Source: Amoeboradix gromovi X-113 (taxonomy: Eukaryota; Fungi; Sanchytriomycota). From it: a DNA stretch of 25,098 bases. The stretch lies in contig JADGIF010000061.1 of NCBI GenBank assembly GCA_018985225.1, forward strand, positions 1 through 25,098, written 5' to 3'. A model generated the notes under the pieces. It was not told the origin of the DNA, made no database searches, and saw only the letters and a program-made list of their open reading frames with translations. This document shows positions 81-25,098 of the stretch, in pieces. Each line of letters begins with the position of its first letter. Positions within the stretch are counted from its first letter, which is position 1. The position numbers were made by a program, and so were the translations under genes.

Positions 81-249
81 GTTTTGTAAGGGCAATCCTC
101 TTCTTTCAACTCTGATTGAATTGTATTTGAAATCATAAAGTCAGTAGTTATCCTGCAATTCTAAAATAAAAGCTAGATGAAAGAGCAAGAGAATAGCTGT
201 ACAGAATATTTATTTTTGAAATTTGGATACATTTTGTTTTGTCTAGTTT

Positions 250-1266
250 TTACAGAGCATGTCCCATATCTTCAAAATAGTGGCACCTGCAATTCATTGC
301 AAACTGCACTATCTTAAGTCGTTCTTCGATCTCAAATAACCCTTTGCATCGCAGAACCAGACGAAGGCCATTAATAAGCCTAAATTGCACCCAATTACTT
401 TTCCACGTGTAGTAGCTACTCTCTACCTCCAAAACTACTTTCTTCTTGTTCAAAAAGCTTAACGTGATTTCTTTACTAAACTCATTTAATGACGCCGTAC
501 CTCTTATCCATTTTCCAATAATAGGTATTGTTGTTTTAGCTTTCGTAAGAAACAAAACATCTACTTTGATATCATTCTTATGTAACGAGAAATTCGATTG
601 TAGATTGTGTGTATTTGACTGCTTTGAGACACCAAGAGACTCAATACGCTCACCCTCAAATACTTCAGTGAATTTTTGTTGTTCTTCTTGGTTTTGCGCA
701 TCAAGGTTCGACGGTGGAGTTTCAATTTTATTTTCTAAATGAGGCGATTCCATGGAAAAGACAGGAATGACTTTTTCATAATCATTAAAGCTCTTTTTTT
801 CAATCAGCGTAGAAGTGCTATGAGGAATACGGGTAATTTCTGGCTGAAAGAATATAGATCTATCAATGGCTTTCCATTTCAACTTGCTCCACCTGTTTTT
901 AATTAAAAAGGGTATTTTTATGGCCATCATCCACTCTGAGATTGACAAAAAAATTGGGACTTGTCCATTGAACGGCTTGCTTGATAATACTTCATAAAAA
1001 TTAGTTGATCCTTCTACCAGCATATCGTGTGTTATGGAACCTTGAATAAAAAGATAATATAAAGAGATAAATGAAATGAGATCTACTCGGTATATTGTCA
1101 AATAGTGTGCTAGGTATGATATATTTTGGACGGGATCTTTTCCAGATATAAGTCCCACAAGTGATGAAATTATTTGATTGTTTAACTCCTCTATGTCTAT
1201 CTTTAGCATCTTTTCGCTAGAGCGAGATATATCAATATTTGATATGGTTCTGATGAATTTTTTCAT
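250..1266 (-). CDS. Hypothetical protein (~338 aa)
   Basis: Long ORF. The track's TTG start at 1308 lies inside a Fanzor end, so the first ATG at 1266 (MKKFIRT) is preferred. No family recognised. Confidence 0.65.
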   Translation of the reverse strand: MKKFIRTISNIDISRSSEKMLKIDIEELNNQIISSLVGLISGKDPVQNISYLAHYLTIYRVDLISFISLYYLFIQGSITHDMLVEGSTNFYEVLSSKPFNGQVPIFLSISEWMMAIKIPFLIKNRWSKLKWKAIDRSIFFQPEITRIPHSTSTLIEKKSFNDYEKVIPVFSMESPHLENKIETPPSNLDAQNQEEQQKFTEVFEGERIESLGVSKQSNTHNLQSNFSLHKNDIKVDVLFLTKAKTTIPIIGKWIRGTASLNEFSKEITLSFLNKKKVVLEVESSYYTWKSNWVQFRLINGLRLVLRCKGLFEIEERLKIVQFAMNCRCHYFEDMGHAL

Positions 1267-1273
1267 ATTTGGC

Positions 1274-1560
1274 CTCCTAATTAAAAGCCCTGATTTACAA
1301 AAAACCAAGAACTATCACAGGCAGAGCCGGTCAATCCACTTTAATGGAAGCGTGAGCAACGGCTGCACTGAAGCTTGAGTTAATAAAGATGCACGTTCTG
1401 GATTCTATCTACTGAAAAATTGGAGCTTGTACATGTAAGTTTTTATGTGTCCAAATTGCATTTATTCAAGCTGCACACCTTGTGCACGTTAGACGAGTAA
1501 GTACCTCTTTGCATTCCACCAACATCTTCCCCTTTCTTTGGAAGATGATTTTACCTTTCC
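1274..1560 (-). mobile_element. Fanzor2/TnpB relic A: decayed C-terminus plus 3' scaffold and end
   Basis: Minus strand 1540-1466 reads QRKGKMLVECKEVLTRLTCTRCAA*, then after a frameshift KLTCTSSNFSVDRIQN. This is homologous to 21090-21392. It ends TTCTTGGTTTTTTTGTAAATCAGGGCTTTTAATTAGGAG at 1274. Confidence 0.75.
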
Positions 1561-1879
1561 GCCATATCAGAATGTCACCTATATCGCCTGGTGACCTCTT
1601 AGCTCTGACTCTTCTGACTGAGATAATTTGGGACACTAGCTGTGTCAGAAACTAGAATTCTCACATATTCTGTTAGATGTTGTGGCGAAGATGAAATGCT
1701 GGAACTGTAAATTCATGCTATAACGATAACCGGTTTATTTAATTTGAGCTAATACTGCTTTTTTCTCGATGCGAATATCGAGAAGAATGGTGTAGTGTAG
1801 GTTGAATGCAACGCGAACATTATGTAGTTGCGCTTAATGCTCTTTATTATCGGTGCACTACTATGTATAAGGGCTTCTA

Positions 1880-1980
1880 ATAGTAGTGGAGATGTGGGAA
1901 CCACTGCAACGAAGTGAATGACTTTTCATTTCGCTGTAGAATTCTTGATTTATTAGAAAACCAGGACTTTTAACGAGGAG
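1880..1980 (+). ncRNA. Candidate Fanzor omega-RNA scaffold / right end, copy B
   Basis: Stems GTAGTGG/CCACTGC (1883-1907), CGAAGTGAA/TTCATTTCG (1910-1933) and TCTTG/CAGGA (1943-1966), then GGACTTTTAACGAGGAG. Collinear with 21300-21399. Only a faint coding remnant lies upstream. Confidence 0.65.
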
Positions 1981-2001
1981 TATTATAAGTCAATTTAATT
2001 T

Positions 2002-2403
2002 TTACTTGATGCTTAACCATTTTTTGTTTAGCTTTTTAGCAGTCTTTCCATTAGACCTTCTTCTACCACCATTAACTGGCAATCCATACTTGAACTTCAT
2101 TCCTCTTATGGTTTGCATCTGGACTTCTTTTATGATATTGCTTTGAACTTTTCTTTTAAGATCGCCTTCCAGTGTCAGATTAGATAAGTGATCCGAGATT
2201 TTGGTTATTTCTGACTCTGTGAGTTTTCCGAAAGTCAATTTTGGTGCTATTGTCAATTTTCCACAGATTTCTTTACCTTTAGCTTGACCTATTCCATATA
2301 TTTTGCTTAAACCGAAATATATGTAATCCGACTGAGGAATTGCGACTCCGAGTAATCGCACACTACTGACAGCTGCTGTGGCACTTTTTACATATTTCGA
2401 CAT
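2002..2403 (-). CDS. SWS2: Mitochondrial ribosomal protein uS13m (Sws2-like)
   Basis: S13 motifs VRLLGV, GLSKIYGIG, LEGDLKR and GLPVNGGRRRSNGKTAKK. Confidence 0.9.
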   Translation of the reverse strand: MSKYVKSATAAVSSVRLLGVAIPQSDYIYFGLSKIYGIGQAKGKEICGKLTIAPKLTFGKLTESEITKISDHLSNLTLEGDLKRKVQSNIIKEVQMQTIRGMKFKYGLPVNGGRRRSNGKTAKKLNKKWLSIK

Positions 2404-2411
2404 AATAATTT

Positions 2412-3725
2412 ATGTTTGATCCTTTTCAATTTTTGTACTTGCCAATTTATTTGTTTAACAAGACATGGTTTGTACCAGACGAACAATTTCAAAGTATAGG
2501 TCTAGCGCATAGATTGGTGTTTGGGTACGGAGAGCTAGTTTGGGAATACACCGATGCAATTAGAAGCGGAATGTGGTACGGAATATTTAACATTTATTTC
2601 GAAATACTTCATTACTTAGACTGGGATACAGTGTTTATGATAAACGATTTTCCTATTGTAGTTGTTTATTTGTTTATGGTGCTTACTCATAGTATTGTAA
2701 TCCCAAAATTTGGTAAATATTATTGGCTGGTTAGTTTTCACTGGATGCATTACTTTATGAGCACTAGAACCCTTGTTAATACTATCGAGTATATGCTCTA
2801 TTCTTTTGCAATACATTCCAGACACTTTTATTTTTTTGTAATTGTGGGTTGCATAATTCGTCCAACCATGGCGGTTTTCTTTATTCCGTTTTTCATCCGC
2901 TCTATATCTAAAAGCAAAAGAGAATTTTATGTCTGGATTAGTTATGCTGCTGTAGGTGTGTTTTTTTCCGTCTTGTCTGATTCAATATATTATGGAAGAC
3001 TAACAAGTTCAATTTGTAATTTTATAACTTTCAACATTGTAAAAGGCCATTCAGAGTACTATGGAGTTCACAGCCCATTCTGGTATTTTACTTCCGCAAT
3101 ACCTACGCTCTTGGGCCCTTCCCTCTTGTATTTTATTGTAGGAATAGCCTATTCATCCAAAAGTAAGTTGTTTGATATATTTATTCCGTTGATCCTTTTT
3201 AGCCTGCTAAAGCATAAGGAATTTAGATTCATATATCCTTTAATGGATCAGCTTTTATTAGTTTCCAAGCACGGTGCTGAAAGAATCAAAAACTTACATC
3301 TATCTAGACTTGTGATTTTTGTGAACTGTTCGCTTATACTGTTTTTTGGCTTTGTTCATCAACGTGGTATATATGATTCTATGAACTACTTGAGGACACT
3401 AGAAGTCCAGTCTCTGCTTATTTTAGCGCCTTGCTACTCGTTTCCAGGCATCTCTTATTTTCATTCCAACTTTAAAATCAAAACTCTTAGCTGTGATCCA
3501 CCTCACTACTTGAATGGACTATCAGAGCAAGATGTATTCTATAGCAACCCTCAAGCAGAATCATATAACATGATATCCAAGTATACCCCCACTCATTTGT
3601 TAAAATTTAGTAGTTTGAACATTGAAATAAACGGATATCATCTAGACAAGTCCTTTTTTAATAGCATATTTCACGACGATAATAGAAGAGTGGGGCTGGT
3701 AGAATTATGGGTTAAAAGTAAATAA
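2412..3725 (+). CDS. GPI10: GPI mannosyltransferase 3 (PIG-B/Gpi10, glycosyltransferase family 22)
   Basis: PDEQFQS...AHRLVFGYGELVWEY, IRPT, HSPFWYF, HKEFRFIYP, VHQRG; multiple hydrophobic segments. Confidence 0.85.
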   Translation: MFDPFQFLYLPIYLFNKTWFVPDEQFQSIGLAHRLVFGYGELVWEYTDAIRSGMWYGIFNIYFEILHYLDWDTVFMINDFPIVVVYLFMVLTHSIVIPKFGKYYWLVSFHWMHYFMSTRTLVNTIEYMLYSFAIHSRHFYFFVIVGCIIRPTMAVFFIPFFIRSISKSKREFYVWISYAAVGVFFSVLSDSIYYGRLTSSICNFITFNIVKGHSEYYGVHSPFWYFTSAIPTLLGPSLLYFIVGIAYSSKSKLFDIFIPLILFSLLKHKEFRFIYPLMDQLLLVSKHGAERIKNLHLSRLVIFVNCSLILFFGFVHQRGIYDSMNYLRTLEVQSLLILAPCYSFPGISYFHSNFKIKTLSCDPPHYLNGLSEQDVFYSNPQAESYNMISKYTPTHLLKFSSLNIEINGYHLDKSFFNSIFHDDNRRVGLVELWVKSK

Positions 3726-3726
3726 T

Positions 3727-5058
3727 TTATTCTGTGATCAATTGAGCTATTACCTTGCCTTTAATTGTTCCGACTACCATACCAGTAGCTCGTTGCAGTT
3801 CCAACGGATGTAAGCTATCGTCAATGTGAATTAATATTTGATTATAATCTTCTGTACATGTTCGTAACTGCAGATCCAATAACTTAGCACTGACATAATT
3901 GATCTCGTCAACTGATAAGTCTATTTCCTTGTGCTGTAGGAAACACGAGTTCAAAAGCTTGTATTCCTTTGTTTCACTGATATCGTTGTAGAATGAATGC
4001 AAGTCTTCTATATGACTGTTTTTTAGTTTCGTTAATGGGAAGCTAAGTAGTCTGATTCTTATTAGCAAATCTTCACTTTTTTTTAACGCTAGTAATATGA
4101 ATTGGTTCAGCATATCCAACTGCTCTGCTTTTAATGCATTCCATGAGCTTCCACAATAGACTAGTATAGATATCCAATTTAGCAAATCATGAGTTGAATC
4201 AACATTGTCAAGCACAGATAATCCGGCCTCCAGTAGTGAAGCATACAGCTGTATTAGATCAATGGCAATAAATTTGTCACATGGAACAGACTTGGAAATT
4301 AAAGAAAGCAATTCATTCAGACTATCCTCACTGGATAACAAATCACTGCATAACATTTTAAGCAAAACAAGTATTTGATAATGAGTGACTGACTTAGATA
4401 GTGAAAGTGCTGTGAGTTGCTGCTCAGCATCCCATGAGTTGTCAAGTAGAACATTGTCCAGGACCAGCGGGTAGCTGTTATTCCTATTAAAACCAATCCA
4501 TTCCAGTAAATACTTTTTTTTCCATTCATAACACTCACTTTTCAGTAACCACTGCAGGATTATGGCACGCTTGTCATGTACAACAATATTTACCTCATTT
4601 GTATGTGATTGAGCCCAAAAAACTAAACATTCTACGCAGTACAACTGATTAATTGGATGAAACCCATCAAATTGAATCATTTGGTCAATAAAACAATACA
4701 TATGCCATAAAGAGATATGGGGATTATATGCTATTGGCATTCTATTTAAATCCATCATGATACCAAGTACAACTGGGATTAACTCTATATCACAAGGTGT
4801 TTCTAGTTTATACCAGTATGATATTGCTTCCTGTGCTGGTTTTGCGTTAGTTTTTGCGAACTGCAAATACTCCATTGTCGGGTAATTGTGCATGTACCAT
4901 GTGGTATGATATTTAAGGTTTCTACTCCTGCTAAACAGCATGCACTGTAGAGATACAGGCTTATTAGGTATGTTGTCAATCGAAACTCCTTGGCTTTCTA
5001 AGAATTCAATCATTTTTTCATCAATTAGTTTTGATGGAAGCAAATCAAGCTGAAACAT
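3727..5058 (-). CDS. Hypothetical Leu-rich alpha-helical protein (~443 aa)
   Basis: Long ORF. First ATG is at 5058 (MFQLDLLPSK); the track start at 5076 is GTG. Tail-to-tail with GPI10, 1 bp apart. Confidence 0.7.
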   Translation of the reverse strand: MFQLDLLPSKLIDEKMIEFLESQGVSIDNIPNKPVSLQCMLFSRSRNLKYHTTWYMHNYPTMEYLQFAKTNAKPAQEAISYWYKLETPCDIELIPVVLGIMMDLNRMPIAYNPHISLWHMYCFIDQMIQFDGFHPINQLYCVECLVFWAQSHTNEVNIVVHDKRAIILQWLLKSECYEWKKKYLLEWIGFNRNNSYPLVLDNVLLDNSWDAEQQLTALSLSKSVTHYQILVLLKMLCSDLLSSEDSLNELLSLISKSVPCDKFIAIDLIQLYASLLEAGLSVLDNVDSTHDLLNWISILVYCGSSWNALKAEQLDMLNQFILLALKKSEDLLIRIRLLSFPLTKLKNSHIEDLHSFYNDISETKEYKLLNSCFLQHKEIDLSVDEINYVSAKLLDLQLRTCTEDYNQILIHIDDSLHPLELQRATGMVVGTIKGKVIAQLITE

Positions 5059-5079
5059 TAACGACACGTCGGACACAAT

Positions 5080-5600
5080 CCGAGAATAGATCCAACTGCA
5101 ATTTCTGGTGACTCCGTCGCTCTCGTAACCATATGTGAACCTCTGATGGTTTCATTAATTGGCAATCGACTGAATCTGAGTGGAACATACAAGCAAATGA
5201 GACAGACTTTGAGAAAAGGGCAATAAAATTAGCCAGAAGACCCACACTCGATGTTGTTTCTAAATCCTTTCAGTTTTTTGCCTCTGGGACATTCATTGTT
5301 ATGCCCGATGCAAATAAAAGCAAATTACTTACTGAGATTACAATTGTTATACATTCTATAGGATGATGTAACATTTTAGCGCAAAGCGTGACAAGACAGC
5401 TCGCTATTTTAAGATATTGGAAAGCTCAAGCTTCTCTACCATTAATATTAAACAACAATCAAAGTCTGCATATCACTAAAAATGGCCTTGGACATTCACC
5501 AGTTCAGAGTTAGCATGATAGCGAACGGTATAAGCAGTTAAACAAAGTTCTTGATCGAAACAATAGAGCTGCGATCAAAATGAAAATGTAAGCAAAGAGT
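5080..5600 (+). pseudogene. Decayed Fanzor1-like ORF
   Basis: RIDP (RuvC-I-like, ~5085), then a frame from 5139 with internal stops: ...EITIVIHSIG*CNILAQSVTRQLAILRYWKAQASL...GLGHSPVQS*...KVLDRNNRAAIKM. By eye this aligns with EYLVVVH...KKLRFRRYQIEQKIM...TLDRDVNAVYNV at 24567-25098. Confidence 0.55.
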
Positions 5601-5647
5601 TATTAAAACCGGAAATGACAATAGAGTGCCCGAACATGCTGTTCATT

Positions 5648-5709
5648 TGAGACTATATGGAATTGAGAATGCCAAAGTGTAGCTGGCTAATTCTCCAAAT
5701 ACTATCTCA
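5648..5709 (+). ncRNA. Imperfect long hairpin after the Fanzor1 relic (candidate omega-RNA remnant)
   Basis: Nested pairs TGAGA/TCTCA, GAGAAT/ATTCTC and GCCA/TGGC. Confidence 0.35.
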
Positions 5710-5736
5710 TGTCATTTTATATAATTAAAAGAATAT

Positions 5737-6678
5737 TTATTTTATCTCCTTGTTGTAAATTCTTTCGTAAGCCTCACTAAATGTAAGTTTATTTTGCAGA
5801 AAATCGCAATAAATTAATTGATTCCATCGTGATGTAGCGTAGCAAGGTATAGCCAGTTTATCAGATATAAATGTTTGAACATTTTCTGCATAAAACACAG
5901 GGTCGGACTTCTCGTGATCATCTGGATAATATAAAGGGTATATAGTTACAGTACAGGAGTGATAAAATTCTGTCAAAATGCGAAAGAGCCATGACTTCCA
6001 CTCCAAACTATCAAAAGCAGGTGAAAAATAATTATAAGGATAACTAAAAGTCATAGGCAGTACTGCGACACCGGGAACAAATGCACCAGTTTTGAAAGAA
6101 ATAACAAAATAGCCGTTTGTTGTGGTAGCTTCAGGAAAAACAGCAACTGGAGGACCAGGATTATTTAATGATTTGGACAACGACTTAGACACACCGTTAC
6201 TCTCACCATTAGTATATAAGCAATTTAATTGATTTGCTACTCTACCAAAGAACGGTATTTTAGAAATCTGAGACCTTCCGATAAACGATGGTACTTCGTC
6301 ATGTACCGCAACAATTATCAGAAAATCAAATAAACTAACATGGTTTGATATAATTAGTCTACTAGTCTCTTTACCATTTCTCTTGTCCAATATGTTCAAT
6401 TTGTAAAAGCCACAAATAAATAACAAAAACCTGGCGCTCCATTTGCATGTTTTCGTAAATAGTACATGAGACCACGAATTGTACTTCATTGGCAGAAAGG
6501 ATAACAAATAAGGTGGTATAACACCGATAGGGCACAATAATAACCGAATTGGCAGTAGTCCTACACTTCCTATAAATATTTTCACTTTTTTGACTAGTCC
6601 AATACCCTCGGGGGACCTGTAGAATGGTAGTACATGCAGCGAGCTTGCTATTTCTCTTGAGTTTTTATTTCCCTCCAT
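5737..6678 (-). CDS. Lysophospholipid acyltransferase (LPCAT/LPEAT-like, PlsC family)
   Basis: HX4D motif NHVSLFD, FPEATTTN, FKTGAFVPG and N-terminal TM segments. Confidence 0.9.
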   Translation of the reverse strand: MEGNKNSREIASSLHVLPFYRSPEGIGLVKKVKIFIGSVGLLPIRLLLCPIGVIPPYLLSFLPMKYNSWSHVLFTKTCKWSARFLLFICGFYKLNILDKRNGKETSRLIISNHVSLFDFLIIVAVHDEVPSFIGRSQISKIPFFGRVANQLNCLYTNGESNGVSKSLSKSLNNPGPPVAVFPEATTTNGYFVISFKTGAFVPGVAVLPMTFSYPYNYFSPAFDSLEWKSWLFRILTEFYHSCTVTIYPLYYPDDHEKSDPVFYAENVQTFISDKLAIPCYATSRWNQLIYCDFLQNKLTFSEAYERIYNKEIK

Positions 6679-6717
6679 TGAAATTAAAATGTTTCAAATA
6701 TTAAATGAAGTCGAAAT

Positions 6718-9047
6718 TTAATTCTGATTTATTAGATACTCTAACAGCACTCTCTGAGCCAAATTCATTTCTCTTAATATCTCTGCTGCCATTCTATATT
6801 AGATGTTATGTACGACTTCTCTATTTCATTATTTGTTTGATTAAACCATCTTAGTGTATCTAGCAGCTTTTCATCAGCACTCTTCTGTGTGCTTGTATTA
6901 GACCCTTCATAAGGTCCAAAGCTTACTCTTTTAGTTTTGCTCTTTACTAGTGGAGAATCCATGATAAATAAATCCACATGGTTCGGTGAATAACTACCTT
7001 CATCTCCATTCATTTTAACCTTCTTGGTACTTGGTGTATTCCCATTAGTGCTCCTCTTCCTAATCGATTGCTGCGTCGAATTTTTATTGAATATTTGACA
7101 ATGCGACTCCTTAAAACCTGTCATGGTTAATAAATCGTATATTGTGGGATACAAATTAGCATTTATCTTCAAATATTCCACCAGTTCATCATTTGTGTTA
7201 TAGTGCTTTAGTATAGATTGCAGCATGGAATCATCTGGTGTAACGAACACACAATAACTTATAAATTTTAAAATAATAGATTTTTCGGTCTCGTTCAAAG
7301 TCAGAGTAGTTGACAAGGTCCCAGCAAATCCCAGTATATCTGTGAGTGTCTCATTTTTGTTTGATTTGTTCAATAGACTTAAGTCCTGTTGAAACACAAA
7401 ATTGTTTAAATGTTTAAAATATTCAAATGTAGATGACCTTATGTTTACATTTGGCTTGGAAACTACGAATGGATTAAGTACATCTTCCTCTATCAGCAGT
7501 GAGCTCATTAGATGTATTTTAATTAGATATGCAAAACAACTCAGCGAAAACCATGACAGGTGAAGTCTCAAATTTTCAATGAATATTATGACTTGCCCCT
7601 CCCATTTAGAAGGCATAATCGATCTTTGTTTAATACTAGATATCAGTTTAGTCCATCCTTCCACCAGGCTCTTCAAGTACGGCGGTTGATTATTAGGAAT
7701 GCCAACGCTTGCCTGATTAACATGCATTATGGGGAACTTTGTAATTTCTATAATATTGTCATGGCTACTGAAGGAATCGGACAAAGACTTTTCATCCAAG
7801 TAGTTAGTGACTCTGATAGCAATAATGTTCCATATCATTAAACCATTAAGAGCATTGTTGGACGAAGAGTCGTTCATTGTATTAGAGTGCAGTACTTGAG
7901 CTAACGCTCTGTAATTGTCCAGAGCAAATAAATTGGATTTAGCAGAAGAAATACAGGCATCAAACAAGTTCTTGGATTCGGTAGAAAATCGAGAAAACAT
8001 GAGATCAGATTTTTCTAATAGCAGTGCGAAGATACACACTACTGGGGTAATCGTTATATTGGCTAGCTTTGCATCATTAAACAAATTGATTTTTTCTTTG
8101 TTTTTAGCAGATAGTCGAAACTTTTGAGAAGCCAATATAGAGGAGTCCATTGCTAGTAGAAACACTTTGTAAAATGACGTTCTTAATACCATGTCAGTAA
8201 TACCGCCATGGCCAGAACTAATACTCAGAAATAGATTATAGATCATTTCGATGATGTTCGGACTAGGATGAATCAATTTAGAAGCCCTGCTCGATAAGAA
8301 TAGAGCCATAGCATGATAAGCATCAAAGTAACTTCTGCTGATGCTTTTAGGGTTTACAATGCTGTTTATGTCCTCTGGTTTTATTTCAGATACATCGGAC
8401 AGACTGTCAAAAAATATCTTGGATAACTGAGGAAACTTTGATTCTAAAAATTCTTGATTTAAGGATGGAAATCTACCCAAAACAGAAGAATGTTCTGTTG
8501 ATGGATTGAAAACCTGAGATAAGGATTCATCATCACTTTCCCGATATGTATTTCCTCTTAAAATAGCAGTTAAGCAAAAAGGAACGTGTTTGGGTGAATA
8601 GTTCAACACATTCTTTAAAAATGAGACTACCACTTTATCCCAGTAATCTTCTAAATCAGGAATAACTACGCATAATCTTACCCATGCGGCAATTATATGG
8701 GTTATGCACTTTTTAATTCCTGCCACAAAGGGAATTTGACAAAGTTCAATCTTTTTATGTGTAAGTAATTTTTCTTTTGACAGCGCCAACATAAACATCG
8801 ACCAAGACTGCAATGCGATATTTATATTCTCACACTTCTTATCGTTAAATACATTCTGAATTTCTTTTAAGTTGCTGTTCAATATCATCTTATCGTGTAC
8901 TACTTTTTTGCGGTTTAGATATACATTCAATCCCCAAAGCTTTACCTTTTCTGCAGAAGTAGACGCTATAATTTTATCGAGCTTAGCGTTATCTTTATAA
9001 ACTGCATCCCAGTTCAGCCAAATTTCCTCAAGCGCATTTGCAGCCAT
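6718..9047 (-). CDS. Probable Rif1 (HEAT-repeat PP1-targeting telomere/replication protein); exons 9047-6814 and 6793-6718
   Basis: Helical N-terminus resembling Rif1_N (IALQSWSMFMLAL...KIELCQIPF), with SILK and KRVSF PP1-docking motifs. First ATG at 9047. Removing a 20-nt intron gives the C-terminus SMAAEILREMNLAQRVLLEYLINQN*. Family assigned from motif recall only. Confidence 0.55.
6794..6813 (-). other. Predicted 20-nt spliceosomal intron GTACATAACATCTAATATAG
   Basis: GT...CTAAT-ATAG, the same layout as the other two micro-introns. Confidence 0.6.
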
Positions 9048-9074
9048 ATCCCCTGTTACAATTTTCAATTTTAA

Positions 9075-10492
9075 ATGTCATCGCCAAAAAGGCTGCAAAC
9101 TCCAAATTTAAATTACTCTTATATACAAACCCAAGAAAATGTAGATTTAGATGATCTAGAACTAATGAACAACTTAGAGTCTAATAGCGACGAGTCCCTG
9201 ACAGAGCAAAAATTGAATACTATCAAATCAAAGTCAAAAAGAGTAGTGTCCAGTTCACCCTCTTATGCAAAAGTACCCAGCTCACCATTTCACTCACGCA
9301 ATACCAAGTCAGTACAAAAACCAAAGGCTGATGCTACAATGGAGCTTGGGCAGTCTGCCGAGCTAAGTTCAGAGGCAATCTTGGATTCTCAAATCGAGAG
9401 CGACAAAATGGAATATGTAGGTTTCAGTCGGTATATCTCATATTTTGTTGATGTGTTTAAAGACCAATATCGAGGCTGTTTCCTAAGTTGGTATAACTTC
9501 TTAAAACTAAATCCTGATTCGCTTCTACAAGTTCTCTCAAAATTGCCTTATCTTGCTGGTTCCTCTAGTCCTAGGCTCAATAATAAATGGGCTCATATTT
9601 GGCACCTCGTTCGTTGCAAACTCCCATTTGAATTCCAGGAACTGGCCCAGGAATACCCATGTTTGATTGAGCGGATTTGTGAAGTAGTTGCTGATAAAAC
9701 GGACTTCAAAACTTTTAAAAGTCATATCAATAGCGTAAAGAGGGAAATCGAAAAATTATTTGTTGTAAGTGTCAAGAAATTGTCTCATATTGAAGGTTCG
9801 GCGATTGACTTACGTATATTTACATACATGTGTTTAGACTCTTCCATATTTAACCTTCTTGTTGATAAATATGTGGACTTTAAAGAGTCGGAGCATCTAC
9901 CAGTCCAAGAGTTACACTCAAATTATTCGCAACAACATGGGTATCCGTCAAGAAAAGAAAGTTCTCCAGTATTTGCATCTGCTCCTAAAAGTTCTGCCAC
10001 GCCGAATTCTAGGAACACATCGAAGTCACCTACACTTAATAATTTTGATGAGTCAATTGATATTGAGGATAGAAAGTTGGTTGTGCCTCAAGCCTCTAGT
10101 ACACCTAGAAACAATGTTAATTACTCTGCTACCGTTTCTCGCACTGTTGATGAATTCAATTCGAAGACCATCTCTCAGACTGTAAATTCATTGGAAGTTC
10201 AATTTCCTAGTCTCAGTGTTGACGAAATAATGGATTTGTTCTACATCTGTAACTACAACGAACAAAGATTCTTGAAATACATGGATGAAAAACAATCAAG
10301 TAATTTGCTGCTAATATAGACCAGCCCATATCAGTTCTTACATGGGATCCAGAAGATGATTATACTTTAACTAGTGTTAACAGCACCCTCGAAGATTTAA
10401 CTGAGTTAAAACAAAGGAAGGGATTGGATGAATGCAAAAGTAGGATTAGAAATCTGTCTTATACACGACTATCAGAGATGCACTTCATTTAA
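9075..10492 (+). CDS. Probable Rap1/TERF2IP-like telomere protein; exons 9075-10299 and 10320-10492
   Basis: After splicing, the C-terminus reads WDPEDDYTL...LTELKQRKGLDECKSRIRNL, fitting the Rap1 RCT pattern W..EDD..L...L...K.G......R...L. Confidence 0.6.
10300..10319 (+). other. Predicted 20-nt spliceosomal intron GTAATTTGCTGCTAATATAG
   Basis: GT-AG with a CTAAT branch motif. Removal restores a frame to TAA at 10490-10492. Confidence 0.8.
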
Positions 10493-10506
10493 TAAATTTT
10501 GTTTAT

Positions 10507-13500
10507 TCATTCACCCTTGTTGCTTTGAAAGATTCGTGGTGTAATGTTCATACTCATCAGTTCTTGAAATAACAGTTTAGTAGCATATGGCATATCCAGC
10601 ACACTTACTTGAGTTTTGTTCTTGCATCCTTTACATTCAAATGTGTTTTTCTTTAGGTTAGCTATAGCGAATAACCCACACAAATCGCAAACATGGACTC
10701 TATAAGCATCGCTATTCTCAAACAATCTGTCTCTCATAAACAATGCAGCGCCATGACTTATCATACAGTCTCTCTCCATTTCTCCGAATCGCAATCCTCC
10801 GTCCCTACTTCTACCCTCAACAGGTTGTCTTGTCAAAATTTGCAATGGGCCCCTAGCACGACTATGTATTTTGTCATCTACCATGTGCTTTAACCTCTGA
10901 TAATAAGTAGGACCTATAAATACTTGAGCATTAATTTTTTTAGATGTATGCCCGTGATAGAGTACCTCTAAACCTCTGCTGTTATAGCCCTCTTTACGCA
11001 GCACATTGCTAATACTATCTACTGTAGTATCTGTGAATGGAGTAGCGTCGCCCTCTGTACCTTTAATAGCACTTGTCTTTGAAAGCAAACATTCTACCAT
11101 GTGACCAATAGTCATTCTACTAGGAATAGCATGAGGATTAATAATTAAATCAGGAATAATGCCATCGCTGGTAAACGGCATATCTTCATCCCTGTAGGTC
11201 ATACCAACAGTTCCCTTTTGACCATGACGACTAGCAAACTTGTCTCCCATCTGTGGTATTCTACAACTTCTGACTCGCACCTTGACAAACCTATACCCTT
11301 CAAAGTTCGTAGTCAGTACTACTTGGTCAACAATGCCATTTTCAGTAGATTTCAGACAAGTACTAACATCTCTCTTAATTTGAGCGCCCTGTACTTCGTT
11401 CTCTACAAGAGGAGTAGTTTTACCAATAATAACATCATCACCAACAACTCGCGTACCTGGGGCAATCATTCCATCATCTTCCAGGTTGATAGCGCTCTTT
11501 TTAACTTTAATAGTTGTGGACTGGTCTGGTTTCTCAAACTGCTCAACTAATGCTGATCCAACTAATTTCTCTTGATCACTGTAACATCTGTAGTACATTG
11601 ACCTAAACAGTCCTCTGTCTATGCTGCTTTGGTTCATGATCAACGAATCCTCCTGGTTGTAGCCACTGTAGCACAATATAGCAACAATAGCATTCTGACC
11701 AGCGGGCAATTCCCTAAATCTTAGAAACTCCATACTTCGAGTACAAGCTAAAGGTTTCTGTGGGTAGTATAATATGTTAGCCATTGTGTCCATTCTTGAC
11801 TGAAAATTTGTAGCAAACAATCCCATTGCCTGTTTTCCCATAGCAGACTGATATACATTCCTAGGTGACTGGTTGTGGTCAGGGAATGGAATGATAGAAG
11901 CACAGACGCCTAATATCATTGAAGGGTGAATCTCACAGTGAGTGTACTGAGTGGCACGATCTACAGCAGTTCTACTTTGCAGGGTGGCAGTTGGATCAAT
12001 CTTTTCTGGAACGTGTCTCTTACCAGCGTACACGTCTAGTAGTTCAGCAGGAGTCATACATATTAATGTAGCTTCTTCTTCTTCTGTATCGATATACTCT
12101 ATGATGCCATTTGAAACTAACCATGAAAAAGAAATTGGGTCCTCATTAGCATCATTTGAACCATTCAAACTACGCATTAGCTTGCTCAAATGATCCTCAG
12201 TCATCTCTAACTGATTGCCAGCTGGATTAACAATGAAGAGTGGTCTTAGCAATCTGCCACTATCTGTGCAAATACGGATTTCTTGATCCCTGAAGTCATA
12301 CACAATGCTCACCTGATGGCTAAACTCATTAAATCTTCTCATTTCTCTTAAATTTCTAACTAGCTCATATGGTGCTCGATGTAATCCCACTAAAGCACCA
12401 TTTAAGATAACTTTAGTCTTATTCTTAAACGCGTCAGCACTAATTTCCTCCAAATTTTCAACCGTGAACTCTTCTAAAAACTCAGCAACAATATTTGAGT
12501 CGCTTCCTACACTAACAGTAGCCATTAGAGCTAAATTCTTAACTAGTCCACAAGCTTGCCCTTCCGGTGTTTCTGCAGGGCATAAATATCCCCAATGACT
12601 GTTGTGCAGTTGTCTAGGTTTAGCAAGTTTACCTTCACGGCCAATTGGGGTGTTCAAACGTCTTAAATGTGATAGAGTACTAACATACGTGTATCTGTTT
12701 AGAACTTGACTCACACCACTTCTAGCCGACATAAACTTTTGCTGATCGCCCCAATTACCTGTGGCCAATGAGTATCTTAAGCCGTCAGTAATAGTTCTAG
12801 TTCTAATTGCCAATGTTAAGTTAAAATCGCGATTGTTATCAATACACCTTTGAAGATACTTTATAACTTCTTTTCTCATTTTAATAAAGCATATACGGAA
12901 TAACGATGTCATTAAGGGTCCAGCTAGATCTAACCTCTTTTTACCATAATGATCTCTGTCATCCAATTCCCTTCTTTCTAGACAGCATAGCAGCATTCTG
13001 TGTGTCATATACCCTAGAAACCAGCCTTTACGAGCATGTTCAACACTTGTAGTACCTATATGTGGTAAAACCTGGTTACTTAACAAATCCTGCGTATATC
13101 TTAACCTTTTCTGTTTATCTATACCCACAACAGTACCTCTTTTAGCTATGAAATCCATTGCCAAGTGCTGATCCTGAATGCTAAATGATTCCTCAATGGA
13201 CGACTTAATCATCTCCAACATTTGTTCATCCTCCATATCGTAGCATATGCGCTCTAATATATCCTTATCGCTCACAACACCCAGTGCTCTAAACACAACC
13301 ATAATAGGGATATCTTGGCGAATATATGGAAGTGTACAACGTATGTTCTTATCATTTAGAGATCTTTTCATTTTTAGCATTAACAAAGCAGGAGATCGAA
13401 ATGACTTCTGCGGAATAGATCTGATTTCACTCATGTAGGCAATGGGAGAGGGTGCAGCTTTGTCGAAAACATAGATCTGGTTTGCTGCCATCCTTTCTTG

Positions 13501-14088
13501 AGCAATGATAACCTTTTCACTTCCATTAATTATAAAGTATCCACCTTGATCGTGAGGACACTCATGAATACTAAACAGATCTTGCTCACTAATATCTGAC
13601 AGAATACAACATGAAGATCTAATCATAATTGGAACTTTACCCAAAAAGACCTTCGACTTACCAAGGACCTTGTCCGGTACTTGTGATTCTGCTTGATTTA
13701 ACTCATCCATTGTAGCGGATTCTGGATCTCTAGTGAATTCCTTGGTACTCTTTTCCATCTCGACAAACAAAGGAGCCGCATAAGTTAAGTTACGCATTCT
13801 AGCCTCAACTGGTAATAAGGGTTGATTGCTACCATCTGCTTCTGTATTTGTGGGTTTGCTAACATATATTTGCGACATGTTGATAGCATACTGCTTAACA
13901 AGTTCTAGTTTGCTGTTCAAATCAGGTTTTGCAGTTTCCACACGAATAGGCCCTTGGTCTCTGACGACCTGCTGAATTTGAATTTTAATAAAATCGTCAA
14001 ATGATTCTAATTGTTGCTTCACTAGACCTCTTTCTTTGAAAAAAGCGCGGATAACAGTCCATTCCAACGATGTGGTATCTGATGACAT
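10507..14088 (-). CDS. RPB2: RNA polymerase II second-largest subunit
   Basis: [46 protein letters not shown] and a C-terminal Zn finger. Confidence 0.99.
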
Positions 14089-14289
14089 TGATTAAGGGGG
14101 TTTGAGAGCACTCGTAGAGTTTTTGAGTTTGCAACATTTATTCTGACTAGGTGAATTGGCTCTACGGTGCATGCTGTAAAGCAGTATTCTAAGTTGCATC
14201 GAAATTTCGCAAAAATCAAGTTGGAAACATCCAAAATAAAACTAGACTGAATCGAAAAACTCATTATCTCGCAACCTGTAGTAAATGCA

Positions 14290-14640
14290 TATAAATATCT
14301 AGCCAGATGCACTTTTAGCAAGTGATACATTAATTTGCAAAAGGTTTCAAGATTGAAAGTAGAATATATATTTAATTCTATGCAAATAAATTCGAAGCTG
14401 ACATTGATGTGTGAAGTAAACCCACCTCTGTTAACGATAATTTACACAGTTTGTCTAGCTAAACAGTTCAAACATTGGCAGCATTTTCAATGAGTACTTT
14501 GATTGTAATATAAATACTTCCAAGTGTAAGTCAGCGTATCCGCTGTGATTTTGTGGACAGAAATGCGAATTCTTGCTGCAATACTTTAAAGATATCCAAC
14601 ATCTGTTAAGAAACTGTAGAGCAACGGCCTGGTAACGAAT
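14290..14640 (+). pseudogene. Heavily decayed Fanzor1-like C-terminal region
   Basis: Motifs in the expected order across frames: YINLQK (14326), NEYF...NTSKC, CDFVDRNANSCCNTLKI (Asp at 14556) and an in-frame RP (14625). Confidence 0.45.
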
Positions 14641-14649
14641 ATACGATTT

Positions 14650-15016
14650 TACTGGTCCAAGAATGAAATGTGATTCTTTGAAGAGTAAGACAAAGATTAC
14701 AGCGTAAGTATTGCTGGAAGCTCAAGTGCAAAGAAGTAGGAGGAACATTGGTGGAATTTAATGAAGCATTTACTACTCATACATGTACAAAATGTGGTAC
14801 TCTGAAGAAAAATAATTTGAAGAGAAGTACACGCACCAACTGCCATTTGGAAGTAGATAGAAACCATATAGTAGGGGAAAGCACATACTTACATGAACTC
14901 TTGGTCTATATCACCTCAGGGTAGTGGAAGCGTGAGCAATCACCGTAGATATACTGGAATATCCACCCTCCTTAGAAATTCTTGATTCCCAGATATCGAG
15001 ACTTTTAATGAGTGGC
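14650..15016 (+). mobile_element. Fanzor2/TnpB relic C: C-terminus plus 3' scaffold and end
   Basis: 14715-14924 reads WKLKCKEVGGTLVEFNEAFTTHTCTKCGTLKKNNLKRSTRTNCHLEVDRNH..., a clear paralog of 21090-21392 with RuvC-III D>N and one Zn Cys lost. Confidence 0.85.
14914..15016 (+). ncRNA. Candidate Fanzor omega-RNA scaffold, copy C
   Basis: CCTCAGGGTAGTGGAAGCGTGAGCAATCACCGTA is nearly identical to copy D. Stems GTAGATAT/ATATCCAC and TCTTGAT/ATCGAGA; end GACTTTTAATGAGTGG. Confidence 0.65.
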
Positions 15017-15109
15017 TATTTAGAGTGCGATCAGATTTTTACTCAGAGCTCTCTTCCTCTTTTCTGCGACCACTCTAAATGTTGAGCAATTAAAATAAAG
15101 TGATATTTA

Positions 15110-15941
15110 TTATCTTTTAACAAAAGGAAACTTCTTTCTTGCTTTTAATTGACCTGGTTTCTTTCTTTCTACTATTCTTGGATCTCTATCTAACAACTCA
15201 TCTAGATTAGCATATAGTACATTCTTGAAAGTAAGGAACTAGAAAAGAGTGCCATTTTGCCAGAGCACGAGCTATTCCCATTCTGATGGACGAAGCCTGT
15301 CCAGACACTCCCCCACCTGAGGTGGTCGCAAATATTTTAAATGACCCATATACATCAGTATCTAGCCCTCTATTGACCGAATCCCAGTGCAAGTGAGCAA
15401 TTTCAAACGGGATCAATATTGATTGTCTGTCTGAAGGATTCACAAAATAATCGTGAAGAGGTCTATTATTGATTAAAGCTGAATACTCAGAGATGATCTT
15501 AGGGTTATGTACAAGCCAAACATTTGCAATGGCGGTTTTACGAGAACCATATCCACTTATTCTACCATACTTGTCAATTGGTAGATCTACACCGTCATCT
15601 GCGACATACTGATTATCTTGAACTGATGAAGTAAATGGCTCAACAAACGACTTGTAAATCAAATGCAAATCATTTTCACTTTTGATATTAGAATTCAAAA
15701 AAATTAGATGGTCGAGAAGCGAAACCCTGTCTCTTATCTTGCCTTCAGTTTTCCATAGATTTTGTTTTGTTTGCCATGGCTGTACAATTGGATCGCCAAG
15801 TTCTTTTATATAAAACATTTTAAGTACTGATTCAATTGGCACATTCTCTTCAACAAAGTCGTTAGGCAAAAGCTTATCTATTTGTGAATCTAACTCAAAT
15901 ATTGTTGGTAAAACTGCATGTCTTCTAGTTAACTTAATCAT
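15110..15941 (-). CDS. MRPS9: Mitochondrial ribosomal protein uS9m; exons 15941-15221 and 15201-15110
   Basis: [10 protein letters not shown] and [19 protein letters not shown]. Splicing restores the canonical end [25 protein letters not shown]. Confidence 0.92.
15202..15220 (-). other. Predicted 19-nt spliceosomal intron GTACTATATGCTAATCTAG
   Basis: Needed to join the conserved S9 C-terminus in frame. GT-AG with a CTAAT branch motif. Confidence 0.9.
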
Positions 15942-15978
15942 AGTTTTTTGTATCTCCAGGTTTTAAACTGCTGGAAAA

Positions 15979-16965
15979 ATGACAGTGGGAAATACAATTA
16001 TTGAAATTACTTCGTTAAATGACATGGAGATCGCTTTCACATTAAAGCAGTCATACTTAAGTATTGCTAATGCACTTCGAAGAACTATCGTATCTGAAGT
16101 CCCAACAATTGCTATTGATCTAGTCAACTTCGAGACCAATACTAGTGTTTTGCCTGATGAATATATTGCACATAGGATGGGATTGATCCCACTAGTCAGT
16201 GACCAATACGTGAATACTCTCAAGTACTCTAGAGATTGTACCTGTGATGATCATTGCGAAAAATGTGCTGTTTTGTATAGAATTGATAAAACGAACACTG
16301 AAAAAGGCACAGATAAGCGAGTCGATAGTGACAGTCTTTGCGTTCAAACACAATATAGTGATGTTCATCCATTTCTCATGGCCGATCTTAAAATACCTGA
16401 CTCATTTGGGAACATCAATACTTATAAAGATGAAGGGGTTCTAATTACGAGGCTGGCCAAAGGACAAACTCTTGCTGTTGAATGTGTTGCAAAAAAAGGT
16501 ATCGGGAAGGAGCATGCAAAATGGTCACCGGTAGCTGGGTTTTCATTCGAGTATGATCCCCACAATAAGCTTCGCCACACTCGTTACTGGTTAGAACAAG
16601 AAATAAGTGGATTTCCAACTTATGGTGCTGCTAAGTGTGTTGGTACACCTATTGAGTCTGCAGTGAACAGTGAAGATGTGGTTGAAAAAGAATGGCCTCG
16701 ATCTAAAAATGCTTTAAAAGAAGATCCCCCTTCCAATCTCAATGAGCCATTATTGGATAAGGTTCCCACAGTATTTTACTTTGAGTTAGAATCAAATGGC
16801 TCACTGAAAGCTGATTTTATTGTTGAGCAAGCTATCGATGTCTTACTACATAAATTTGCGTTGTTATACACCGAACTAAAGAGCGAAACAGACGAAGTTG
16901 ACCAAGAACATGATAATATGCTTGAGGATGTTCAATTACCTATAAATGCGGGCTGGGGTGCATAA
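15979..16965 (+). CDS. RPB3: RNA polymerase II subunit 3
   Basis: ANALRRTIVSEVPTIAID, DEYIAHRMGLIPL, CTCDDHCEKC and KGIGKEHAKWSP. Confidence 0.97.
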   Translation: MTVGNTIIEITSLNDMEIAFTLKQSYLSIANALRRTIVSEVPTIAIDLVNFETNTSVLPDEYIAHRMGLIPLVSDQYVNTLKYSRDCTCDDHCEKCAVLYRIDKTNTEKGTDKRVDSDSLCVQTQYSDVHPFLMADLKIPDSFGNINTYKDEGVLITRLAKGQTLAVECVAKKGIGKEHAKWSPVAGFSFEYDPHNKLRHTRYWLEQEISGFPTYGAAKCVGTPIESAVNSEDVVEKEWPRSKNALKEDPPSNLNEPLLDKVPTVFYFELESNGSLKADFIVEQAIDVLLHKFALLYTELKSETDEVDQEHDNMLEDVQLPINAGWGA

Positions 16966-16993
16966 TAAATAAATAAAAGTATTTTATTAAATG

Positions 16994-18928
<1,935 letters not shown>

Positions 18929-18980
18929 TTAACGGGGTTTTTCCAGATATTTCAATTAATAGCGAAAACGAGATAATTTA

Positions 18981-19856
18981 CTAAGAATAGTACGCATCCA
19001 TCCAGCAATCGATTATGTTGTATATACTAGATAAGCACATGAGTTGGTTGGTAGGATCTATCGGTAAGTTACATTCCAAGCATATATCCGCATTTTCAGG
19101 AGGCAATGTGATTTTTAATGACGATTTTTCAACAGACAGTTTTGAATCCATCTCAAAAGCCAACTGCTTCGATGGTGTCTGAACTTCAATGTTCTTTGAT
19201 TTTTTTGGAGTGGAAAAGCAACTGGAGCACCGTTCTCCAGCCGTAGGAGCGATTTTGTTGGCATTTCCGATATCGCGATCAATTTCAGCTTTATGGTATT
19301 TTAAAGGTGATTCGCATAACGTCTCTTCGATTGTTTCATCGAATACGTTTATTTCTTCTCCAAAATCTTTTAGAGTTGTGGAATTCATGCCCTCGAATTT
19401 TCTGCGCTTTTCTGACAATAAGCTGTCTTCGTCAAAAAAAAGATTATCCACTCTCCTTTTATTTCCAACAGAATTCTTCCAGCTCTGCTGATACATGGGT
19501 ATAAACTTAGTGTACCACTCTTTGGATTTATAATTTGATCCTTCTAAGTAGTGTTGATGAATAATTTCCAGATATAGTACTTCTTTTTCTTTACTGGTAT
19601 CAATTTCTGGAGAGAATTTTGGACACTTACCAATGTTTTCCTTTTGTTCAGAAACAAGTCTTGTAACTTTAAAAGGATACCAGTTAGCAGAATATTTGAC
19701 AAAGGATTCTATTTTATCAGTATAATACACGTGCCTATATGACACACTGGACTTGCAGCCCTTCTTGGCTTCAGAATACTCAATATGAAAAATTGGTTGC
19801 ATATTATGAAACAATGTTAACCCTTGGAACCTATATACAAAGCGCGTATCCTTCAA
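18981..19856 (-). CDS. Hypothetical protein with a Cys-rich C-terminus; both ends uncertain (may have unrecognised introns)
   Basis: 291-codon ORF with a TTG start in the track. It ends CLECNLPIDPTNQLMC, resembling half of a PHD/RING finger. Confidence 0.6.
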   Translation of the reverse strand: MKDTRFVYRFQGLTLFHNMQPIFHIEYSEAKKGCKSSVSYRHVYYTDKIESFVKYSANWYPFKVTRLVSEQKENIGKCPKFSPEIDTSKEKEVLYLEIIHQHYLEGSNYKSKEWYTKFIPMYQQSWKNSVGNKRRVDNLFFDEDSLLSEKRRKFEGMNSTTLKDFGEEINVFDETIEETLCESPLKYHKAEIDRDIGNANKIAPTAGERCSSCFSTPKKSKNIEVQTPSKQLAFEMDSKLSVEKSSLKITLPPENADICLECNLPIDPTNQLMCLSSIYNIIDCWMDAYYS

Positions 19857-19909
19857 AATCTATCAATTGCTAAACAAAAGCGTTGCATCAGTTTTTCTAC
19901 TTACTGTCA

Positions 19910-20296
19910 ATGAAACGTGGAGGAAATTTGCTCATTCCTTATGCAGCAGTATCAAAATCACAGCAAGAACAGATAGAGGCAGTAAATGAGTGGCCTGAAT
20001 ATACACCAGAAGATCCTGAGGCATTAAATGATGAAATATCTCAGTGGGCCATTAAATTTTGTAAGAGAATGAGAGATATTCATGATTTGCACGAAGATAC
20101 TGTTGATGACTACATGCCTAGTGAGTTAACAAAAAAATCGACAATAATGAAGAATGGTCAAGTGACTAACTCTTCCAGTGATGATGAAGATGCAGAAGGT
20201 CCTCCGTCTGAGAATAATGTACCTACAGAAGAGGAAGACAATGATTACATAGCCGATTACTTTGATGAGGAGGCAGATGCTTTCGGAAATGAATAA
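19910..20296 (+). CDS. RPC31: RNA polymerase III subunit RPC31/RPC7-like
   Basis: WPEYTP, YMPSEL and an acidic tail with EEDNDYIADYFD. First ATG is at 19910. Confidence 0.6.
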   Translation: MKRGGNLLIPYAAVSKSQQEQIEAVNEWPEYTPEDPEALNDEISQWAIKFCKRMRDIHDLHEDTVDDYMPSELTKKSTIMKNGQVTNSSSDDEDAEGPPSENNVPTEEEDNDYIADYFDEEADAFGNE

Positions 20297-20393
20297 AGTT
20301 TATTAATTATGAAATCGCTTTCTTTTTACATTTGGGACGTCAAAGTCTTGATTTAAGAGAAAATTAAGGATTCTAGTGAAATTGATAAAGCCA

Positions 20394-20500
20394 GTCGCCC
20401 CATTAAACCTATAGCTCATGCTTCCGCTACCCATAGGTAAGATTGAATAGGGATTGAGGATTCATGAAAGTATTTGAGACCCATTCTGACAAAATATCCT
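20394..20500 (-). mobile_element. Fanzor2 relic E: internally deleted 3' scaffold and end
   Basis: Minus strand CTATTCAATCTTACCTATGGGTAGCGGAAGCATGAGCTAT matches D (TTATTCAATCCCGCCTCAGGGTAGTGAAAGCGTGAGCGAT), then jumps to TTTAATGGGGCG. Confidence 0.7.
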
Positions 20501-20699
20501 CATTTTCAAGTAGGAGTAACACCTAGAAACCATACTAGATTACCCGTTATCATTAATTCATCATGACAACACAACCAAGAAACGAAAACCCCCGATAATG
20601 CTCAAATACTAGAGAGAAAATTAAAAACATTAAGACAGAACATGAAAATGGTTATAGTTTGGGACATTGCAACATGTATTCAAGTGCTAATCAGCCAAG

Positions 20700-20960
20700 C
20701 CATTTTAGAAAAGATATTTCCAGTGCATCTTTCATATTGAGAGAAGACTTGATGTGTTTTATTGCATACTATCAGTGTCTTTCCTCTTTCTTAAGAACTG
20801 AAATTTATTTTTTGACCAGTTTGAGTATTTTTTGCAGCTTGACTATTTTCTTGAATAAATCATTTATCGCGAATTCGTATATATTTTTGTATCATTTCAA
20901 CACTTTTCCAGATTTTTCTAATAGCTTAAATACTAGATATTCTTCCTATTCGCAAGTGGT
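20700..20960 (-). pseudogene. Decayed Fanzor2-like N-terminal segment
   Basis: Minus-strand frames read KNIYEFAINDLFKK and NKFQFLRKRKDTDSMQ, resembling the AINDL...F.L.FR.KK region of IS607-type TnpB/Fanzor2 (from recall). Confidence 0.45.
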
Positions 20961-21009
20961 AAATGGAATCTAAAGAAATAACTAAAGGTACAGCATCATC
21001 TCAGACTGA

Positions 21010-21399
21010 TAAGCTGGTCCAAAGATGGAAGAATTAGATGTCTTTCAATGCCTAGACAGTGATATCTGTACAATTTATTCAAGGAACGCTTGAAGTTCAA
21101 GTGTAAACAAAGAGGAAGGACTATACTCGAACGTAATGAATCATTTACTAGTCAGACATGTACAAGGTGTGGTACTCTAAAGAAAACCAATTTAGAAACA
21201 TGCACATGTACAAGTTGTCATTTGGAGATAAAAAGAGACCATATGGCAGCAAGGAACATATACATCAAGTATCTGCATCCTTATTCAATCCCGCCTCAGG
21301 GTAGTGAAAGCGTGAGCGATCACCGTAACGGAGAAACTAGCATTAGTTTCTCTGTGGAAATTCTTGATTTTCTCGGAAATCTGGACTTTTAACGAAGAG
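21010..21399 (+). mobile_element. Fanzor2/TnpB relic D, the best preserved: RuvC-II, Zn ribbon, RuvC-III and right end
   Basis: LFKERLKFKCKQRG...NESFTSQTCTRCG...CTSCHLEIKRDHMAARNIYIK. No RuvC-I; stops lie upstream. Confidence 0.9.
21294..21399 (+). ncRNA. Candidate Fanzor omega-RNA scaffold, copy D, overlapping the ORF 3' end
   Basis: GTGA/TCAC stem with GC-GTGA-GC tetraloop, 12-bp stem ACGGAGAAACTA/TAGTTTCTCTGT, GATTTT/GAAATC stem and end GGACTTTTAACGAAGAG. Confidence 0.7.
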
Positions 21400-21489
21400 T
21401 TATAAAATCTTAAAAGAAAGTATATTTTGGCGATATATTTCATGTGATCGCCATATATGGCTTATTAAATTACGATCGAGATCTAAAAC

Positions 21490-24489: not shown

Positions 24490-24566
24490 TATGAAAGGGG
24501 ACGCACTCTATGATTTCTAGGTTAGGGGTAAATCTAGTAGAAATACATAGGTCCCATATCATGTCA
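24490..24566 (-). ncRNA. Candidate Fanzor1 omega-RNA / 3' end hairpin
   Basis: Directly after the stop codon: GGGAC-CTATG-t-ATTTCTA-(18 nt)-TAGAAAT-CATAG-agtgc-GTCCC. Confidence 0.55.
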
Positions 24567-25098
24567 CTATGCAGCGACACTTTGTTGCCACAAAGATTTT
24601 TCATTAAAAAGTAGATAAGATTCTACTACTTCCATAACATTATATACAGCATTCACATCTCGATCTAACGTTACGAGGCAATGTTTACATTGTCGTAATC
24701 GAAGTCTTCTAGAGCGAATTTTAATCCATTCTTTATCTTCATTCAGGTGATGACATCCCGAACAAGAATGATTACCAAGGTCCTTTTAGATAAAGCATAA
24801 GTTAACTTTTTGTTCATGGCAGATTCACATCCGTGGCTATTATGTTTATAAGACCCATCTCCATAATAAATGACTTTCTTATTCTTTTTGATATTGGTGT
24901 ATCTTGTCTTTTTTCTCTTATGATCATTAAAAGACATATTGGTCGCCATCACTTGTCCACATTGAACTTCTTTATACACTAGATCCATTATTTTCTGTTC
25001 TATTTGATACCGTCTAAATCTTAATTTCTTACAAGTTCTCGTCCCATAATGATGTCTTACTTTGTTAAAATAACGATGAACAACAACAAGATACTCTG
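24567..25098 (-). pseudogene. Fanzor1 C-terminal half, frameshifted; continues beyond the window
   Basis: KKLRFRRYQIEQK...KVIYYGDGSY...ALSKRTLVII, frameshift near 24766, then CSGC...CKHCLVTLDRDVNAVYNV...* with TAG at 24569-24567. Confidence 0.88.

Follow-up and report, generated by a model that had tools for sequence, protein, structure and literature searches.

The window, a stretch of 25,098 nucleotides of contig JADGIF010000061.1 that was analyzed at its whole length, comes from the sanchytrid fungus Amoeboradix gromovi X-113. Its DNA is compact and eukaryotic, with a GC content of about 36%, and it carries genes for Rpb2, Rpb3, DBP2, an MSH5-like protein, and mitochondrial ribosomal proteins. 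It also contains five related transposon ends (A to E), which had been proposed to belong to a dispersed Fanzor2 family whose structured 3′ RNA, a candidate omega-RNA, outlasts its protein. We find that the ends belong to short derivatives of an IS607-type transposon that encoded the recombinase TnpA and a Fanzor2 nuclease. The derivatives have decayed in a neutral-like way, and in all likelihood none of the five copies is active now.

A profile built from genome copies of the element places the five ends where they had been reported: D at 20835-21398 (+; E 1e-179, profile positions 1-592), C at 14706-15013 (+; E 7e-50), A at 1538-1274 (-; E 3e-16), E at 20461-20341 (-; E 2e-11), and B at 1883-1980 (+; E 2e-9). 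Positions hold overall, but some boundaries moved: C ends at 15012 and not 15016, E lacks the terminal GAGGAG, and D proves to be an entire element of 565 bp, not a right end alone, with its left end at 20835-20837. The reported TnpB-type remnants before A, C, and D are also present. The peptides of D (E 4.6e-15) and C (E 1e-7) match PF07282, and the copy A remnant aligns with the same open reading frame (ORF) region at the DNA level. The nearest proteins to the D peptide in EukProt are all labelled Amoeboradix gromovi.

Copy D (20838-21399, +) is, by its profile match, a complete short non-autonomous IS607/Fanzor2 element, without terminal inverted repeats (TIR) and without a target-site duplication (TSD) beyond AG. 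It follows a GCAG (20834-20837, +) that we predict to be its target and target-adjacent motif (TAM); the family prefers RCAG, most full copies have CAG just ahead of their left end, and AG is the crossover core. The left end (20838-20965, +; best genome candidate 98%) is followed by a scrap of the N-terminal helix-turn-helix (HTH) of the TnpA serine recombinase (20970-21077, +; E 0.019 in D and down to 1e-7 in sister copies), fused by deletion to a Fanzor2 C-terminal remnant of 100 codons (21090-21392, +). This remnant retains the shifted RuvC-II Glu (21138-21140, +), then a C4 zinc ribbon, and the RuvC-III Asp (21237-21239, +); RuvC-I and every upstream domain are missing. The omega-RNA scaffold (21290-21399, +) comprises a 5′ hairpin (21290-21301, +) with a pseudoknot loop, stems 1 to 3, the pseudoknot strand, and the AG core. 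In D the pseudoknot strand is GAAG, with one pair broken, and the right flank (21400-21415, +) would be the guide; no target for it next to an RCAG occurs at any other place in the assembly.

The other four copies are older. Copy C (14706-15012, +) is truncated at its 5′ side and consists of an ORF remnant and scaffold; it stops at the first AG (15012), which leaves the pseudoknot strand incomplete. Copy A (1274-1538, -) also has an ORF remnant and scaffold, is about 61% identical to the young consensus, and carries a micro-inversion in place in the stem-1 interior (1345-1359, -), as does C11/L051. Copy B (1883-1980, +) is a right end only, without the 5′ hairpin and pseudoknot loop, and is the best-folding old copy. 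Copy E (20340-20476, -) is an old right end that reaches to about 20340, is unfolded, and has lost the terminal pseudoknot strand. None of the five keeps an intact 5′ hairpin and pseudoknot, and folding surpasses that of shuffled sequences in B and D only (z -3.2 for B, -2.1 for D, -0.3 for A, -0.5 for C, and +1.2 for E). Rfam returned no match. The genome search gave no close relatives of A or B, which rules them out as members of separate young subfamilies. The back-to-back pairs A/B and E/D look like independent insertions crowded into short intergenic gaps. Nested insertions also occur in L003, L009, and L012; at L009:1083-1192 a young copy has gone into a GCAG in the third stem of an old right end, and nesting is common. 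At 1266-1274 (-), the end of copy A lies 7 nt before an ATG of a 352-codon ORF (250-1308), a closeness that is probably a consequence of the very short intergenic gaps.

The family is dispersed, as had been noted, but amounts to many hundreds of copies rather than five. A search of the A. gromovi assembly (10.55 Mb, 1319 contigs) gave 887 candidates with the D peptide, 768 with its right end, and 520 with its left end; these are first-look totals and not exact counts. They suggest roughly 500-800 young copies, or some 3-4% of the genome. In the flanks sampled, old right ends (60-75% identity) were about as frequent as young copies. D-type copies form a young wave that lies 1.5-9% from its consensus, with no sampled copy nearer than 1.5%, and A, B, C, and E belong to an older wave that is about 30% diverged. 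Aligned copies are 536-623 bp long, end sharply, and lie in unique flanking sequence. At the left junction stands RCAG, with a purine at -4 in 54 of 61 full copies and CAG in most, and the relatives L068 and L069 have the same CAG ahead of their left ends. On the right, copies close with GAGG-AG; in about 12 of 71 the end falls on an AG three bases earlier, as expected for recombinase crossover at a second AG core. AG stands at both junctions, between unique flanks and without TIR or TSD, as described for IS607 elements (PMC10711439); no empty site that would confirm the junctions directly was found in the assembly.

Longer copies and relatives link the family to a TnpA-Fanzor2 transposon. On contig C977 the left end of the window family is joined to pieces that match C46, which has a broken serine recombinase and, overlapping it, an open Fanzor N-terminus of 335 aa that continues past the contig end. 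There are 12 hits to the serine recombinase family PF00239, and TnpA overlaps the nuclease gene in both C46 and the relative L102, the arrangement of IS607 elements. The published Fanzor fingerprint is a DPG in RuvC-I together with a Glu placed six residues ahead of the zinc finger (PMC10711439). The DPG is present in the longer family copies C385 and C565, which have stops and frameshifts, and in C542; it is deleted in all five window copies. Copy D has the shifted RuvC-II Glu six residues before its C4 zinc finger, then the RD of RuvC-III. The genome is eukaryotic, and the family falls among the DPG/shifted-Glu proteins and not with canonical TnpB. In a quick, midpoint-rooted tree with few labelled references, in which an X marks each break of the disrupted transposon ORFs, the window family joins C542, L102, P0006, P0007, P0020, P0023, and P0035 with support 100. 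The Fanzor2 origin that had been proposed is therefore upheld by the DPG and shifted Glu of longer copies, the serine-recombinase TnpA, and the AG core. By every sequence feature tested the family is of the IS607-Fanzor2 kind; the five copies themselves do not pass as working loci.

An intact ORF with D-E-D had been named as something to look for, but no open full-length D-type ORF, cognate to the scaffold, was found in the fragmented assembly. D-type Fanzor pieces leave contig ends. C542 (L048:1473-3488, -) encodes an open 671-aa Fanzor2 ORF (P0057) with D471/E605/D635. Its best PDB match is 9B0L (E 2e-13), and the ORF is identical letter for letter in the contig of the source run, which is the same data and not independent. 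It overlaps a TnpA that passes NF033518 and whose HTH is interrupted by an in-frame stop, so we dropped C542 as a fully intact element. Its 3′ end is single-copy and unlike the A-E scaffold; it was also dropped as a pseudoknot example, with a right end that has two candidate positions. The nearest open relative is L102 (Ga0102960_1025404), an intact metagenomic TnpA-Fanzor2 element with a five-pair pseudoknot. P0035 adjoins a capsid gene of a nucleocytoplasmic large DNA virus (NCLDV, giant virus); virus-borne transfer is plausible, with no direction shown. A viral scan with P0006 alone gave no matches.

The three-hairpin RNA at the right end fits an omega-RNA scaffold, as had been proposed, and also has a pseudoknot that had been missed. 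The scaffold is about 110 nt long and comprises a hairpin (stem of 3 bp, loop of 6 nt), three stems, five bases complementary to the loop, and the core dinucleotide; it overlaps the 3′ end of the ORF and ends at the right end of the transposon. The 5′ hairpin loop pairs with the last scaffold bases in 54 of 55 Watson-Crick pairs across 11 lineages (45-74% nucleotide identity where measured), with two-sided changes at four of the five positions, and the closing stem covaries too. When strands are swapped between lineages, 38 pairs remain. The strands were picked by eye and the pairs tabulated by hand, which makes these counts partly circular, and MAFFT did not bring the strands of distant lineages into register; the position of the Amoeboradix end, however, comes independently from aligning its many copies. 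Pairings of this sort also turned up in a blind scan, at 11 of 68 related loci (4.0 when shuffled). The older-wave consensus has an identical fold: stem 1 carries a G-C in place of an A-U, stem 3 is paired throughout, and the pseudoknot has five pairs. The pseudoknot thus stands beside the would-be guide in the family consensus and relatives and is broken or absent in each of A-E. Together with the older-wave fold, the covariation across lineages indicates that the structure was under selection in active masters. These features support the right end as an omega-RNA scaffold, the guide of which would be the right flank. The region was found in a single sequencing run, which is of DNA. In the bacterial element ISXfa1, breaking one such pseudoknot pair lowers activity more than 10,000-fold (PMC10711439).

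The convincing covariation is that between lineages, in the pseudoknot. Within the window, the stem-2 arms do pair as reported (9/9 in B, with one G-U, 7/8 in C, and 9/9 in D), but their differences are better explained by different ancestral masters, with decay or hairpin template switching, than by covariation. Template switching may reshape hairpins without selection, as the in-place inversions in A and C11 suggest.

The claim that the RNA outlasts the protein is not supported. Among 61 young full copies, divergence is similar across the element (left end 4.8%, ORF scrap 3.9%, RNA 4.3%) and substitutions fall alike on paired (167, 189 expected) and unpaired sites (110, 114 expected). Single changes preserve pairing in 33% of cases (32% expected), two double changes keep pairing and four break it, and rare changes have observed/expected (O/E) ratios of 0.92 at paired and 0.86 at unpaired sites. 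All pairs are kept in 12 of the 61 copies, against 10.0 +/- 2.8 in simulations. Selection on RNA pairs was not found in these copies. Old ends (n=17) fold like neutral simulations, with a mean z of -0.43 compared with -0.35 to -0.39. An apparent excess of synonymous changes in the ORF scrap (ratio 0.54) was set aside, as copies were chosen by protein similarity. The scaffold of protein-less copies is thus not conserved beyond neutral expectation, a weak stem-3 signal and copy B being the exceptions, and these comparisons do not support selective retention of the RNA region after protein loss. The RNA of protein-less copies appears to survive because the right end is required for transposition and the scaffold is carried along.

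We propose that an IS607-type transposon, with TnpA overlapping a Fanzor2 gene and an omega-RNA at the right end, entered the A. gromovi lineage, and that internal-deletion derivatives arose that kept both ends. TnpA acting in trans may have excised and inserted these mini-elements by AG crossover, as IS607 biology suggests. While an intact Fanzor2 lasted, the right-end transcript (scaffold and flank guide) would have directed cutting of the empty RCAG-flank site and so restored the element (PMC10711439, PMC10055086). Copies A, B, C, and E would be fossils of the older wave and D a member of the younger one.

Several observations weigh against decay without function. Stem 3 has 24 substitutions where 48 are expected, and its rare changes have an O/E of 0.61 (P 0.03, uncorrected). 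Broken pairs are slightly few overall (P 0.03), and the fold of copy B is much stronger than neutrality would give (z -3.3). Copies were chosen by similarity to D, which biases the rates. Among old hits, right-end-only fragments outnumber left-end-only ones, though the older wave may have had different left ends. Given fragmentation into 1319 contigs, an intact master copy may be unassembled.

If such a master (D-type) or C542 supplied an intact Fanzor2, some young copies (not A, C, or E) could be transcribed and load their omega-RNAs into it, guarding insertions against excision. The 12 young copies with all pairs, the mild stem-3 conservation, the open C542 ORF with its catalytic residues, and the D-type pieces that run off contig ends are compatible with this, and there is precedent in Spizellomyces (PMC10432273) and in palindrome-associated transposable elements (PATEs; PMC10055086). 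We nevertheless consider live guides unlikely: 12 copies is the neutral expectation, no sampled copy is nearer than 1.5% to the consensus, the C542 3′ end does not resemble the scaffold, and D has a broken pseudoknot and a guide without a target in the assembly. Somewhat more doubtful still is a genome-wide anti-excision network in which hundreds of protein-less mini-elements guide one remaining nuclease, with possible cross-use of the scaffold by C542.

Another explanation is that old-copy hairpins, and B in particular, were domesticated by the host as terminators or 3′-end signals within the very small gaps between genes, or that template switching rather than selection perfected them. Copy B is the sole strong outlier (stem 2 at -16.5 kcal/mol, reached by 0 of 200 shuffles) and lies directly beyond the stop of a ribosomal S13-like gene, and the micro-inversions in A and C11 are of the kind that template switching leaves. 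It is one outlier among about 20 old ends and is without relatives, and we regard this explanation as quite improbable. Contaminating bacterial or viral DNA might be suspected in a whole-genome-amplified assembly, with close relatives in giant-virus contigs (P0035, beside the capsid gene). The copies lie between fungal housekeeping genes (Rpb2, Rpb3, DBP2, MSH5-like), on hundreds of contigs, with matching GC, and their unique eukaryotic flanks refute contamination almost completely. Decay of IS607 TnpA-Fanzor2 derivatives remains the likely explanation.

The family resembles the known IS607 Fanzor2 elements ISvMimi/ApmFNuc and ACa-1 (Bao and Jurka, PMC3627910; PMC10530073; PDB 9B0L), which also have TnpA and Fanzor2, no TIR or TSD, a DPG and shifted-Glu RuvC, and a right-end omega-RNA. 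It differs in its sanchytrid host, in having AG as core and RCAG as target where those elements have GG/GGG, and in the dominance of hundreds of deletion derivatives of about 0.6 kb, at an estimated 3-4% of the genome. The right element RNA (reRNA) of ISXfa1 TnpB (Yoon et al., PMC10711439) likewise has three stem-loops, a pseudoknot between a loop and the bases before the guide, and the core dinucleotide at the scaffold end. That system is bacterial and intact, whereas here the pseudoknot is deduced from covariation, and each of the five copies in the window has it broken. Trans action of protein-less omega-RNA loci has already been proposed and partly tested (PMC10432273, PMC10055086). The Fanzor1 ghosts of Spizellomyces punctatus and the PATEs are similar in being about 550 nt long and protein-less, with the omega-RNA end kept, and are proposed trans guides. 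The Spizellomyces ghosts carry inverted repeats, and their function as scaffolds has been demonstrated; compared with ghosts and PATEs, the copies here are Fanzor2/IS607, retain a gene scrap, and show no sign of selection. Within the literature searched, no paper mentions Fanzor with Amoeboradix and there is no Fanzor report for its phylum, so the family appears uncharacterized, as the original prediction had it, but it belongs to a known kind of system. It records a large IS607 serine-recombinase amplification in a fungal nucleus and provides a natural covariation set for the Fanzor2 pseudoknot, hitherto hand-annotated, together with a predicted RCAG TAM. It also highlights open-frame nucleases (C542/P0057, L102, P0006, and P0007). 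Function does not necessarily follow from a structured omega-RNA in copies that lack the protein, as the end may be kept for transposition and then decay.

The genome also contains a second, distant IS607/Fanzor2 family (C459, C392, C689, C373, C578, and C1028; L037-L046); in C459 the TnpA frame is open and the nuclease is frameshifted. A remnant of a separate Fanzor1-like nuclease, disrupted near RuvC-II, lies at 24573-25098 of the window (-; PF07282 E 4e-5). It has 36 genome matches, and intact kin may be present on contigs C1184 (open frame of 748 aa) and C363 (693 aa). An inverted repeat of 33 nt (88%) at 17528-17635 lies within or beside the DBP2-like gene and is probably its intron. The motif TGGGAC-N11/12-CTAG occurs 5′ of two host ORFs, at 243-266 (-) and 24534-24556 (-), two occurrences where 0.22 are expected. 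It is a candidate promoter element, and a similar motif is also found 5′ of L069.

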